This document shows positions 350 through 29,031 of a DNA stretch of 35,179 nt, piece by piece. The notes under the pieces were generated by a model. The model was given only the letters and a program-made list of their open reading frames with translations, was not told where the DNA came from and did no database searches. Every line of letters begins with the position of its first letter. The stretch's first letter is position 1. The position numbers and the translations under genes were made by a program. The stretch covers positions 1-35,179 of the forward strand of contig NIVC01004778.1 in the NCBI GenBank assembly GCA_002269645.1, in the 5' to 3' direction. Source of the DNA: Macrostomum lignano. Its lineage: Eukaryota.

Positions 350-703
350 CCATCACGGTGACAGCAGCCTGCGAGTTGACCGCCTCAATCCGCAGCAGGG
401 CTCCGCACTGGAACACCCCGTTCTGACTGGCGTTGACTCGCAAGACAGTCAGACTGCCGTTGGCATCGGCCAGGTCGCTGATGTCCCCGAATCCTGGCAC
501 ACTGTCAATCACTCCGCAGCTGCCCAAGGCCGGCTGGCACCGAAGCAGAGTCTTGGCCGCCGAGGATGGCGCGGTGAACGTCCAGATGATGTAGGATGGC
601 TGCGGGCTGAAGCGGCAGCTGAGCGTCAGGTTACTGCCGAGAGCCACCGCGGTGTCGCTCAGGGACTGCGTAAGCCGCAGCGGGTCGCCGGCCGCCAGGT
701 CCA
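350..703 (-). CDS. Gene B exon: N-terminal V-type Ig1 domain; gene continues off the left edge
   Basis: DPLRLTQSLSDTAVALGSNLTLSCRF...IIWTF...NGSLTVLRVNASQNGVFQCG...AAVTVM. Acceptor CATCCTTGCAG|TG; donor ATGG|GTGAGG; phase 1-1. Confidence 0.88.
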
Positions 704-748
704 CTGCAAGGATGAGTCCAGGGTGATGAAAGCTCATTCTCTCTTACC

Positions 749-27300: not shown

Positions 27301-29031
27301 AGCCAGCGCAGCCTCGGCGCCGGATTGGCGCGGACGCGGCAGACCAATCGAAAATTAGTGGAGCCGACGCGCGCCGCATTGGCGCCAGTAGGCGCTGATT
27401 CTACAGTCAGACTTGGCGCCTGGTGCACCAGCAGGCTGACTGGCGCCGATTCGCTGGTGCCCAAGTCGTTGACGGCCCGGCAAGCGTAGGAGCCGCTGTC
27501 CGACAGACCGACGGGTGAGAACCGGACAGACGGGCCGGCCGGCAGATGGACGGGCGAGGATTGGATTCGAACCCAGGCCAGGCTGGGCGCGGGCTCGCCA
27601 GGGGACACCTGGCTGGGCTGGCAGGTGAGGTTGACGGACTCGCCGGCTAGAAGAGGTGAGCGGGGCTGCGAGGCCTGCGGCAGGCCGGGCCGGTAGCGGA
27701 CGGTCAGGACGACAGCAGAGGAGGCCGTGTACTCGGTCGGCGGCCCGCTGCTGGCTGTCAGAATCGAGCGCGCTTCGCAGTGCCAGACGCCGGCGTGGCG
27801 CCGCGGATCGGCGCCATCTAATCGGAGGGCGCCGTCCGACGAAGGCGGCAGAGCGGCGCCGGTGGCGTCGTGGCGCCAGACGAGCTCGGCTGGCGGCGGA
27901 TTGCCGTCAACGGAGCACGGCAGGGTGACGGAGCCGCCGGCGTCAACAACGGCCGAGGCTGGCGTCCGGACGGTGGGCTGGTACAGCACGGACAGGCGGA
28001 AGGCGGCGGTGGCGGTGCCCAGCGGGTTGACGGCCCGGCAGGCCAGGGCGCCGGCCTGGGACCGGTCCACTGGGTACAGAGTGAACATGCCGCTGGCCGA
28101 CTCTGGGGTGCAGATGGAGATGAGAGACTGGGTGAGTTCGGCTCAGTGCTGTGCTGTCATTTGCCGATGTCTTTTCACTCCTCAAAGTTTGATATCACTG
28201 TGTGTCACTCTTAGCCACAAATCGAAAATCACTCAATGTCACTCTCAATATCACCACCCTTAACCAATGCCACTCTCGACATCACTCTGAATGTCACTCT
28301 CGACATCACTCTGAATGTCACTCTCGACATCACTCTGAATGTCACTCTCGACATCACTCTGAATGTCACTCTCGACATCACTCTGAATGTCACTCTCGAC
28401 ATACTCTGGATGTCACTCCCGAAGTCACTCTTAGCATCACTATCAACTTCGGCTATTACTTTGTGTTTTCCGTCTCATCTCTCACCCTGCATAACGGAGC
28501 CATTCGCTCCAATAAGCTGCAGCCTGGGTGCCGGGTAGCCGCCAGCTGAACAGGCCACGGGCACTGAGGAGCCCTCGACCGCGGTCAGGTCTGCGATGCT
28601 GCCAATCGATGGCTTATCTGCTCGATAAATTGATAGGCAAGGTTAAAAAGACATGAAATTGAAAATATTCGATAAGAGATCATTTAATAAGAACAGCCGC
28701 TCACGTTTGACCAGCAGTTTCAGCTGGGCAGCGGACACGCTGGCATTGCTGAGCTCAGTCTGTGCTGCTGTACAGATCAGCACGGCCTCGTGATCATCGG
28801 CGCCAACCGTCAAGCGGAGGACGCTGCTGGCCGGGCCAAATTTTGCAGCGGGCGGAGAATACAAGGCCAATGCCGTCAGGTCGTCACCAGCCGGCTTATC
28901 TATGGAGTTTCTTAGCCAGGTAAGGCGAGGCGGCGGGTTCCAGCCCGAACCGCTGTTGCAGGAGAATGTGGCGAGGTCACCGGAGGTCAACTGGGTCGGG
29001 CTCTGCACGATGGACGGCTCCGAGCCGGTGA
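18209..29031 (-). CDS. Gene A (5'-incomplete, 9 exons): Echinoid/Fred-like, nephrin-related Ig-superfamily single-pass adhesion protein; Ig2-Ig7, FN3, FN3-like, TM, cytoplasmic tail
   Basis: Exons 29031-28705, 28617-28486, 28102-27238, 26058-25922, 25241-24994, 24206-23474, 20881-20686, 19587-19373 and 18300-18209 join via GT-AG introns with matching phases (1,1,2,1,0,1,2,1). They give one open frame of 2945 nt ending TGA. Domain order and the C-terminal VIYEVVV resemble Drosophila Echinoid (7 Ig, 2 FN3, TM, C-terminal EIIV; recalled knowledge, not searched). Confidence 0.88.
18371..18600. repeat. 68-bp tandem repeat, about 3.3 copies
   Basis: Copies start at 18371, 18439, 18507 and 18575. 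Confidence 0.92.
18601..19325. repeat. 20-bp minisatellite
   Basis: AGTAGACAAGAGATAGATAA and variants. Confidence 0.95.
19373..19587 (-). CDS. Gene A exon: cytoplasmic low-complexity region
   Basis: KKSSYSSDFRQG...HLFPN. Acceptor TCTTCCTTTCAG|C; donor ACA|GTGAGT; phase 2-1 fits both neighbours. Confidence 0.85.
19625..20577. repeat. 20/22-bp minisatellite
   Basis: GATTAGCAATCCA(G/T)TGGGTA(TA/CA) units. Confidence 0.95.
20686..20881 (-). CDS. Gene A exon: transmembrane helix, basic stop-transfer segment and Q8 tract
   Basis: IIIVACVCGAVILALAIVLIWLC-TRR...QQQQQQQQ. Acceptor CTCTCATTGCAG|TG; donor GG|GTGAGT; phase 1-2. Confidence 0.9.
21658..21790. repeat. (TC)n microsatellite
   Basis: About 65 units with two small interruptions. 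Confidence 0.97.
21929..22157. repeat. (TAC/TGC)n trinucleotide repeat
   Basis: Imperfect CTA/CTG run; source of the poly-Leu ORF. Confidence 0.93.
23071..23460. repeat. 50-51-bp G-rich minisatellite, about 7 copies
   Basis: GAAC(A/T)CGCGGAGTGGGGTGGGTGTCATGAGGGGG(G/T)AGGAATGGATAGAGA at 23071, 23121, 23171, 23222 and onward. Confidence 0.94.
23474..24206 (-). CDS. Gene A exon: end of Ig7, FN3 and Cys-containing FN3-like domain
   Basis: VNNSLG...APDPP...WKPGFDGG...GLYPDTAYDVVCVAENRLGES, then YCARVEAS..W..CL...RVSLCLANRTDVCG. Acceptor ATCCCCAG|GT; donor C|GTGAGT. Confidence 0.92.
24294..24930. repeat. 33-bp minisatellite
   Basis: GGACCGGAAGTGGATAGCGGAGGCTTATCCAAA units. Confidence 0.95.
24994..25241 (-). 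CDS. Gene A exon: most of Ig7
   Basis: TQPSIVNAF...LACQF..VTWRT...GNYTCQ. Acceptor AAGCAG|CC; donor CAG|GTATTC; continues as VNNSLG in the next exon. Confidence 0.87.
25364..25915. repeat. 23/25-bp minisatellite
   Basis: AGAGTCCATGACCAGTATTCAAATC grading into CACAGTCAATGACCAATATTCAAAG. Confidence 0.94.
25922..26058 (-). CDS. Gene A exon: C-terminal half of Ig6
   Basis: FEYQLTLHF...LNDTGVYQCFADNELGNSTAEHRLEVL (DxGxYxC motif). Acceptor CCCACAG|A; donor TTGA|GTAAGT; phase 2-1. Confidence 0.9.
26310..27210. repeat. 30-bp minisatellite with 118-bp higher-order period
   Basis: GAGTGACAGAATGGAGAGTGACGGAAGTAG; near-identical ORFs start at 26562, 26680, 26798, 26916 and 27034. Confidence 0.94.
27238..28102 (-). 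CDS. Gene A exon: end of Ig3, Ig4, Ig5 and start of Ig6
   Basis: ORF 27234-28088: CRAVNPLG, CSVDGNPPP..W..CEA, CQP..W..GSYACRAVNDLG, CRVRANPAPRLRW. Acceptor ACCCCAG|AG; donor TC|GTAAGT. Confidence 0.92.
28195..28440. repeat. 24-bp minisatellite
   Basis: CATCACTCTGAATGTCACTCTCGA, about 6 clean copies plus degenerate flanks. Confidence 0.9.
28486..28617 (-). CDS. Gene A exon: N-terminal half of Ig3 (not in ORF track)
   Basis: HKPSIGSIADLTAVEGSSVPVACSAGGYPAPRLQLIGANGSVMQ. Acceptor GAGCAG|AT after an 87-nt intron; donor CAGG|GTGAGA; phase 1-1. Confidence 0.85.
28705..29031 (-). CDS. Gene A exon: Ig2 (C2-set, nephrin/Echinoid type)
   Basis: xTGSEPSIVQSPTQLTSGDLATFSCNSGSGWNPPPRLTWLRN...DDHEAVLICTAAQ...LKLLVK. 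Acceptor CCCGACAG|TC (weak pyrimidine tract); donor AAAC|GTGAGC; phase 1-1. Confidence 0.85.

Follow-up and report, generated by a model that had tools for sequence, protein, structure and literature searches.

Two neighbouring immunoglobulin-superfamily receptor paralogues, each probably cut by a contig end, in Macrostomum lignano

The window analysed here is the entire contig NIVC01004778.1 (35,179 bp) of the Macrostomum lignano Mlig_3_7 assembly. It contains parts of two genes on the minus strand, gene A (29031-18209) and gene B (7675-350), which are separated by 10.5 kb of minisatellite-rich intergenic sequence (7676-18208). The part of gene A that comes first in transcriptional order is the 3' 6.1 kb of a large intron (29032-35179) between its own Ig1 exon, which is off the contig, and Ig2; this part ends in a 25/55-bp minisatellite at 34685-35179. 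Ig2 is encoded by one exon (28705-29031, phase 1 in and phase 1 out), the first exon of the 5'-partial GenBank CDS PAA46606.1. The following exons encode the first half of Ig3 (28486-28617), the end of Ig3 with Ig4, Ig5 and the start of Ig6 (27238-28102), the end of Ig6 (25922-26058), most of Ig7 (24994-25241), the last strand of Ig7 together with two FN3-type domains (23474-24206), and the transmembrane helix with a poly-Q juxtamembrane stretch (20686-20881). A cytoplasmic exon (19373-19587, donor AAC A|gtgagt) and a last exon (18209-18300), which ends in KVIYEVVV and a stop codon, complete the gene. This exon model matches every residue of a 981-aa partial protein (P0001), which is PAA46606.1 ("BOX15_Mlig016458g1, partial"; 100% identity, encoded on NIVC01004778.1). 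Gene A is therefore a known M. lignano protein, already recorded in GenBank as 5'-partial. The initial annotation had found no recognisable Ig1 in the 6 kb upstream of gene A, and we agree: with the complete gene A protein, including its true Ig1, as tblastn query against the window, no Ig1 was detectable in 29032-35179. The sole window match at Ig1-exon coordinates was the Ig1 of gene B, at 30% identity.

Only the beginning of gene B lies in the window. Its signal-peptide exon, MAERFALTLALIIL, is at 7633-7675 and has the phase-1 donor TTG G|gtaagt. The V-set-like Ig1 exon (350-703) has four conserved cysteines and is phase 1 at both ends, with its acceptor at 705-704 and the donor ATG G|gtgagg. 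The first 349 bases of the Ig1-to-Ig2 intron (1-349) then run to the contig end and consist wholly of a 41-bp C/T-rich minisatellite. An ATG at about 735 inside the exon (MSFHHPGLILAV...) was considered as the start of gene B and rejected for the exon at 7675, because it has a poor hydrophobic core, because the acceptor at 705-704 is clean, and because a protein model from the ML2 assembly (UniProt A0A1I8IJX7, here P0003) has the junction ALALIIL|VDLAAG. Over the boundary between signal peptide and Ig1 this model reads ...MTERFAPALALIIL|VDLAAG....

Tandem repeats make up about 40% of the window, so that a contig ending in repeats is unremarkable. Both ends had been described as rich in the same kind of repeat. 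Each is indeed C/T-rich on the plus strand, but the two minisatellites are different: TRF reports a 41-bp unit on the left (8-351) and the 25/55-bp unit on the right, and a BLAST comparison of window 1-8000 with 29032-35179 gave no similarity at E<=1e-5, hence no overlap or common repeat between the ends. A tRNA scan and an Rfam scan of the window found nothing; a tRNA-like stretch near 1000-1190 was called by neither.

In order to assess the apparent complementarity of the two gene parts, which the initial annotation had called exact, we joined the Ig1 exon of gene B (703-350, phase-1 donor) to the Ig2 exon of gene A (phase-1 acceptor at 29031). The join was reproduced exactly: it gives AAVTVM-V-TGSEPSI, in nucleotides GCTGTCACCGTGATGG|TCACCGGCTCGGAGCC with GTGATGG|TCACCGG at the boundary, and one frame of 3342 nt (1113 aa) whose single stop is at its end. 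Thus the in-frame join is real, but the fit is no better than expected, since 7 of the 10 introns in the joined model are phase 1. Ig1 and Ig2 are each a single symmetrical 1-1 exon, and Ig-domain exons bounded by phase-1 introns are an established pattern in the exon-shuffling literature. The Ig1|Ig2 intron has the same position and phase after the gene A Ig1 (GTC G|gtgagt) and in a third paralogue, Mlig000261 (P0043; GTC A|gtgagt). This paralogue has an equal exon plan, in which an Ig1 exon with a phase-1 donor is followed by a 6.8-kb intron and an Ig2 exon. The Ig1 of gene B fits the Ig2 of gene A in frame because this intron is conserved in phase 1 in all three paralogues examined; judged by phase, the Ig1 exon of any of them should fit the Ig2 exon of any other.

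What lies beyond the right end of the window can be read from two collinear sister contigs, NIVC01000142.1 (L002, 847 kb) and NIVC01001261.1 (L001, 79.7 kb), which together are 92-99% identical to it. L002 is collinear from window position 35179 to 14503, with 97-99.4% identity across long unique blocks, and L001 from 35179 to 8829, mostly with 92-97% identity; neither is rearranged. The sister loci compared end 1.1 kb (L001) and 6.8 kb (L002) before the first exon of gene B. The intron part at 29032-35179 corresponds to L002 26760-33685 at 99.4% identity. Past the point that matches 35179, both contigs have 10 kb of further unique intron and then the own Ig1 exon of gene A (Ig1'; about 16204-16549 in L002 and 17677-18021 in L001), and its own signal-peptide exon lies at 10001. 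The distance from Ig1' to Ig2 is 16-17 kb in the sister contigs (in L002 the intron is about 16.4 kb, from a donor near 16549 to an acceptor near 32919), of which the window holds only 6.1 kb. Farther upstream, L002 carries a TTL-family gene and not gene B.

The annotated proteins follow the same arrangement. P0023 (1131 aa, complete; NIVC01001261.1) and P0022 read ...GIRVVVV-V-T[G/A]SEPSIVQ..., and NIVC01000142.1 has an annotated 5' part of gene A with the identical Ig1'-Ig2 junction. The annotation behind P0022 and P0023 derives from a genome-guided RNA-seq transcriptome (PMC5730564), and its transcript-based products join Ig1' to Ig2 as GGGTTGTTGTTGTCG|TCACCGGCTCGGAGCC. A conventional, cis-arranged gene A is annotated in full on NIVC01001261.1. 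Gene A corresponds to the proteins PAA70170.1 (BOX15_Mlig027676g1, 1131 aa, complete), PAA89651.1 (Mlig000244g2) and PAA46606.1 (Mlig016458g1), which fall in one 90%-identity cluster; the first two are subgenome copies of the third and display the true N-terminus. There is no biological difference between them and gene A of the window; the first two coding exons of that copy simply fall past the end of the contig. Mlig_3_7, from the neopolyploid M. lignano, has a published three-copy S/L1/L2 subgenome structure (PMC10733133). The three collinear contigs resemble these paralogous blocks, and having three near-identical copies in the assembly is consistent with that structure.

For the left end we used P0003, an automatic prediction, partly a fusion of genes, made on the older and more error-prone ML2 assembly. 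It represents a slightly different copy, with 3 residue changes in the signal peptide. In order, it has the last two exons of gene A, the signal peptide of gene B and Ig1. It covers window 7861-7634 before Ig1, and its Ig1 is 98% identical to window 716-351. Another 1107 residues follow Ig1 (AAVTVM) and contain a separate Ig2-Ig7 and a pair of FN3 domains, with SKPVIEAFGAESG... in Ig2'. In 725 collinear residues this body shares 29% identity with gene A (34% for the central Ig exon, tblastn), and residues 347-454, its own Ig2 region, had no tblastn match in the window. We infer from this model that the gene B copy on NIVC01004778.1 would continue in the same way past position 1. A protein search with Ig1+Ig2+Ig3a gave no match at E<=1e-3 and was uninformative, and so was one with the gene B signal peptide, Ig1 and the Ig2' of P0003, which gave none at E<=1e-3 among 8000 word-sharing candidates and missed P0003 itself. 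An exhaustive search of representatives with the gene B signal peptide and Ig1 returned other paralogues only (<=44% identity) and no Mlig_3_7 gene B protein.

Taken together, these results point to two ordinary adjacent, same-strand and anciently diverged IgSF adhesion-receptor paralogues, each cut by a contig end and cis-spliced, a reading to which we assign a probability of roughly 0.92. The contig would start within the 16-17-kb intron that separates Ig2 of gene A from the gene's own Ig1 exon, and would stop 349 bases into the homologous Ig1-Ig2 intron of gene B, with minisatellites at both breakpoints; each gene would be cis-spliced to its own exons. Because the contig is cut inside two homologous introns, gene A seems devoid of a signal peptide and Ig1, while gene B seems to consist of nothing else. 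Ordinary tandem paralogues had been one of four readings in the initial annotation, and this one is borne out by the own signal peptide and Ig1 of gene A on two sister contigs and by the diverged Ig2 onward that P0003 gives for gene B. By the same two proxies, a separate signal peptide and Ig1 lie beyond 35179 and a diverged Ig2 follows the gene B Ig1; these are the sequence findings that the annotation had said would, together with single-copy depth and no 350-29031 junction reads, leave tandem paralogues alone.

Gene B on this subgenome copy may instead be a truncated remnant, a pseudogene fragment of signal peptide and Ig1 next to a complete gene A with its 5' exons off the contig. The contig does stop 349 bases past the Ig1 exon with nothing visible downstream, and our searches recovered no Mlig_3_7 (NCBI) gene B protein, although this is explained by their limitation to 8000 word-sharing candidates and by 50% clustering. 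We consider a remnant very unlikely, since the Ig1 exon is intact, keeps the four cysteines conserved in the family and is well bounded by splice sites, and in P0003 a 98%-identical Ig1 precedes a full domain set. The three other readings of the initial annotation fared worse. In a collapsed array, whose units would be nearly identical, about 35 kb long and broken within the Ig1-Ig2 intron, the Ig1 of gene B and the Ig2 of gene A would belong to one true gene; the in-frame join, which yields the full layout of signal peptide, seven Ig, two FN3 and TM, and the C/T-rich minisatellites at both ends would agree with it. However, beyond the right end the sister contigs hold 10 kb of unique intron and then an Ig1 that is only about 30% identical to that of gene B and has its own signal peptide, and farther upstream in L002 there is the TTL-family gene instead of gene B. 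Identity between the bodies is 29%, the repeats at the two ends have unlike units and share no similarity, and the transcript-based products carry Ig1'-Ig2, so this highly improbable reading is already contradicted.

An assembly misjoin, in which the parts of gene A and gene B are not neighbours in the genome, is about as improbable as the array. Both Mlig_3_7 and ML2 are drafts that are known to contain errors (PMC5730564), but the window is collinear and unrearranged with L001 over 35179-8829 and with L002 to 14503, and the independent ML2-based P0003 gives an equal order, from the gene A tail through window 7861-7634 to Ig1. Circular DNA, exon scrambling or intergenic trans-splicing that links the gene B Ig1 to the gene A Ig2 seems extremely improbable. 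The spliced-leader trans-splicing machinery of M. lignano is active (PMC5730564) and the splice phases are compatible; yet such compatibility is common to all three paralogues that we examined, the transcript-derived annotation of two sister contigs shows gene A cis-spliced to an Ig1 of its own, and the two contig ends neither overlap nor resemble each other. Since all paralogues examined have the Ig1|Ig2 intron in phase 1 and trans-splicing is active, low-level intergenic chimeric mRNA that diversifies the receptors is conceivable, either as gene B Ig1 with a gene A-type Ig2 or as gene A-to-B read-through of the kind seen in the fused ML2 model; our results lend it no support, and we regard it as very unlikely. 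Two ordinary paralogues remain our preferred reading, and they carry a caution for fragmented, repeat-rich and polyploid assemblies: a short contig whose two ends fall within homologous introns of adjacent paralogues can mimic a permuted or split gene, and the phase-1 rule of Ig exons lets such false joins read in frame.

M. lignano has a small lineage-specific 7Ig-2FN3 receptor family of at least four paralogues, including one tandem pair or more. Three subgenome copies exist of each of the two paralogues that were traced to contigs, gene A and Mlig000261. The family layout is a signal peptide, seven Ig domains, two FN3 domains, a TM segment and a short tail ending in KVIYEVVV, a C-terminus common to gene A and Mlig000261. 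Seven Ig domains were counted by Cys pairs along the exon model, which also has a hydrophobic TM exon. Pfam gave V-set, C2-set_2, Ig_3, I-set and fn3 matches on P0023 and P0043; the fn3 match on gene A scores 20.9 bits, under the 25-bit cut-off, and that on P0043 scores 36.6 bits, over it. The members are plausible candidate cell-adhesion molecules, and there is nothing unusual about them.

The name "Echinoid-like", given in the initial annotation, holds for the domain layout only. Drosophila Echinoid and Friend-of-echinoid, which are homophilic IgSF adhesion receptors, likewise have seven Ig domains followed by FN3 and a single TM segment. Echinoid was absent among the 21 database matches of a search that scored 8000 word-sharing candidates. 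Outside Macrostomum the best matches, with 21-30% identity, were to CD22-like, nephrin-like, Dscam and Robo proteins, and a PDB sequence search gave contactin-2, Robo and MDGA1 as best matches, which is generic IgSF with no subfamily assignable. The Echinoid-like cytoplasmic tail here has no recognisable domains and a short hydrophobic C-terminal motif. Drosophila Ed carries a PDZ-binding motif (PMC3172166), and the KVIYEVVV tail may be likened to it as a motif resemblance only. The gene organisation resembles that of generic IgSF genes, with 1-1 exons for Ig1 and Ig2 here and in the paralogues; compared to that organisation, Ig3, Ig6 and Ig7 are split or fused over exons, which is ordinary.

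The two gene halves are very probably those of two ordinary tandem paralogues, each truncated by a contig end. The window is one whole small contig (35,179 bases) of Mlig_3_7 (GCA_002269645.1), which was assembled with Canu from PacBio reads, along with Illumina and 454 data, into 5,980 contigs. All coding features of both halves are on the minus strand of the window. The gene A model was built with splice sites from three-frame displays and then fitted to a database protein, P0001 (PAA46606.1). The fitted exons are 29031-28705, 28617-28486, 28102-27238, 26058-25922, 25241-24994, 24206-23474, 20881-20686, 19587-19373 and 18300-18209, with the Ig2 acceptor reading ...cccgacag/TCACCGGCTCGG (reverse complement of 29025-29040; slash, splice site). 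The translation is exactly this 981-aa GenBank entry, 'hypothetical protein BOX15_Mlig016458g1, partial', which was retrieved at 100% identity in a protein search queried with the joined model. Its sole contig is NIVC01004778.1, that of the window, at record positions equivalent to 29032-18209. Pfam assigns C2-set_2/Ig_3 to Ig2, strong Ig_3/I-set/Ig_2 matches to the central exon and fn3 to exon 24206-23474. The cytoplasmic tail has eight consecutive glutamines (CAG repeat, 20710-20735) immediately inside the membrane.

The missing 5' part of gene A is found on sister contigs. The 90% cluster of P0001 has two further GenBank proteins, namely P0023 (PAA70170.1; complete, 1131 aa), encoded on the 79.7-kb contig NIVC01001261.1, and P0022 (PAA89651.1; 680 aa), encoded on the 847-kb contig NIVC01000142.1. 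The two proteins start with a signal peptide (MPSTAVLLALTSSSANRPRLLVVLLAVTICC...), followed by an Ig1 (LSVSVSSNSGQYLSELSNLRLHCNVSEKPDYIFWYY...KEGIRVVVV) and then by V-T[G/A]SEPSIVQSPTQ..., which is gene A Ig2. Since the GenBank annotation of Mlig_3_7 was built on a genome-guided RNA-seq transcriptome (PMC5730564), this junction is transcript-derived. The corresponding loci, L001 (NIVC01001261.1) and L002 (NIVC01000142.1), are collinear with the reverse-complemented window: L002 at 99.4% identity in the first 6.9 kb and 97-98% beyond, L001 at mostly 92-97% over long unique blocks. The right end of the window (35179) aligns with 26760 in L002. The signal peptide, Ig1 and Ig2 acceptor of gene A are at 10001-10105, ~16204-16549 and ~32919 in L002 and at 10001-10108, ~17677-18021 and ~35215 in L001. 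From these positions the Ig1-Ig2 intron is 16-17 kb long; the window carries only its last 6.1 kb and hence has no Ig1 upstream of Ig2. Using the complete gene A protein, tblastn found no gene A Ig1 within the window, the sole match at Ig1-exon coordinates being gene B Ig1 at 30% identity. Upstream of gene A, L002 has a TTL-family gene on the opposite strand and not another IgSF gene. Relative to the window and L001, L002 lacks one base of a GGG stretch in the Ig7 exon (CTCGGGTT to CTCGGTT; L002 ~36895, window ~25153), and for this reason P0022 ends at 680 aa. The loss is either an assembly error at a homopolymer or a genuine frameshift of one subgenome copy.

Both contig ends are inside minisatellite arrays: a C/T-rich one with a 41-bp unit on the left (8-351) and one with a 25/55-bp unit on the right (34685-35179). 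The window contig stops inside the right-hand array, as this array begins ~90 bp further out in L002 (26674 vs 26760). BLAST found no similarity shared between the two ends, nor between all of 1-8000 and 29032-35179. Tandem repeats make up ~40% of the window (26 arrays, units of 2-240 bp), and many units are related, C/T-rich and present in both orientations; G+C is 66% in exons vs 49% overall. Between genes A and B, two minisatellites of ~0.9 kb (12041-12922 and 13596-14506) share a 10-bp unit but run in opposite orientations, (GTGAGACAGG)n and (TCTCACCCTG)n. Together they form a large imperfect palindrome around a ~670-bp spacer, and L001 aligns with the whole region in both orientations.

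Gene B has two exons within the window: a 43-nt signal-peptide exon (7675-7633, minus strand; MAERFALTLALIIL, donor TTG G/gtaagt) and the Ig1 exon (703-350, minus strand; Pfam V-set/Ig_3), whose donor is ...GCTGCTGTCACCGTGATG G/gtgagg (reverse complement of 345-365). Its continuation is seen in P0003 (UniProt A0A1I8IJX7, 1453 aa), a fused automatic model of the older ML2 assembly. Residues 1-96 correspond to the last two exons of gene A, residues 94-169 to 7861-7634, the region with the gene B signal-peptide exon, and residues 225-346 to Ig1 (716-351, 98% identity). Past ...AAVTVM, the model has 1107 more residues without counterpart in the window, comprising a separate Ig2 (SKPVIEAFGAESGAGAVTVRRGASISLKCSAAGANPAPDIVW...), more Ig domains and two FN3 domains. 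By BLASTP, residues 741-1391 are collinear with gene A 289-959 at 29% identity, so that gene B is probably an old and complete paralogue. The argument is weakest here, as the continuation comes through an ML2 protein model; protein searches recovered no Mlig_3_7 protein for gene B, and the sister loci cover window coordinates only down to 8829 (L001) and 14503 (L002). The ML2-based UniProt models are chimeras: P0003 fuses the gene A tail to gene B with the signal-peptide region duplicated, and A0A1I8HY28 (P0002) fuses a rhodopsin-type GPCR, a translated minisatellite (GPDIPVLGPDIPVL...) and gene A. The first intron of gene B also has a tRNA-like stretch (GGGGCCGTAGCCCAGCGGTAGCGCAGC...GGCTCGATTCCAAG; ~1000-1190, minus strand) adjoining an 11-bp minisatellite, which may be a tRNA-derived SINE; neither ARAGORN nor Rfam called it.

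The initial annotation had joined position 350 to 29031 exactly, and we reproduced this to the base: AAVTVM-V-TGSEPSI in a 3342-nt frame that encodes 1113 aa and has its only stop at the end. In this chimeric model 7/10 introns are phase 1, and phase 1 also holds for the Ig1-Ig2 intron in every case examined, with donors ATG G/gtgagg in gene B, GTC G/gtgagt in gene A's own Ig1 exon and GTC A/gtgagt in the third paralogue Mlig000261 (P0043, 1091 aa), where a 6.8-kb intron and the acceptor cacag/CA follow. Five Ig1 regions of the family, when aligned, share four conserved cysteines and the NG[ST] motif. Among the examined paralogues an Ig1 exon is, by phase, in frame with any Ig2 exon. The 1113-aa product is expected from conserved exon structure and is uninformative on whether the pieces are actually joined.

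Among the readings offered for the join, only that of tandem paralogues held. A collapsed array of near-identical units is contradicted by the sister contigs, which have unique intron sequence and an Ig1 of only 30% identity at the place where such an array needs gene B Ig1. An assembly misjoin is likewise contradicted, as the window is collinear with two contigs and the ML2 model P0003 has the same order. Spliced-leader trans-splicing is in use in M. lignano; however, gene A transcripts are conventional, and a circle, exon scrambling or trans-splicing is not needed. A truncation of gene B on the subgenome copy of the window is unlikely, with nothing to suggest it. Three subgenomes (S, L1 and L2) make up the neopolyploid M. 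lignano DV1, and Mlig_3_7 loci are often present three times (PMC10733133). The three contigs with the gene A region fit this structure, as do the three with Mlig000261 g2, g3 and g4. The gene is already annotated, and the fragmentation and triplication of the genome are already published.

Gene A, gene B, Mlig000261 and A0A1I8HL17 (P0004) belong to one Macrostomum family. Its layout is a signal peptide, a V-like Ig1, a C2-like Ig2 and five further Ig domains, then two FN3 domains, a transmembrane segment and a short tail. Apart from an identical C-terminal octapeptide, KVIYEVVV (window 18209-18232; P0023 and P0043), a candidate PDZ-ligand or sorting motif, gene A and Mlig000261 are poorly conserved, with roughly a quarter of Ig1 identical. 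The closest outgroup matches of the joined model, at 21-30% identity, are CD22-like, nephrin-like, Dscam and Robo proteins; in the PDB, contactin-2, Robo and MDGA1 match best. Neither the protein nor the PDB searches gave a sequence-level tie to Echinoid. Judging from architecture only, the family is most likely a homophilic or heterophilic cell-adhesion/recognition receptor with the C-terminal motif as anchor. The layout is like that of Drosophila Echinoid, which has seven Ig domains and FN3 and whose tail carries a C-terminal PDZ-binding motif only (PMC3172166).
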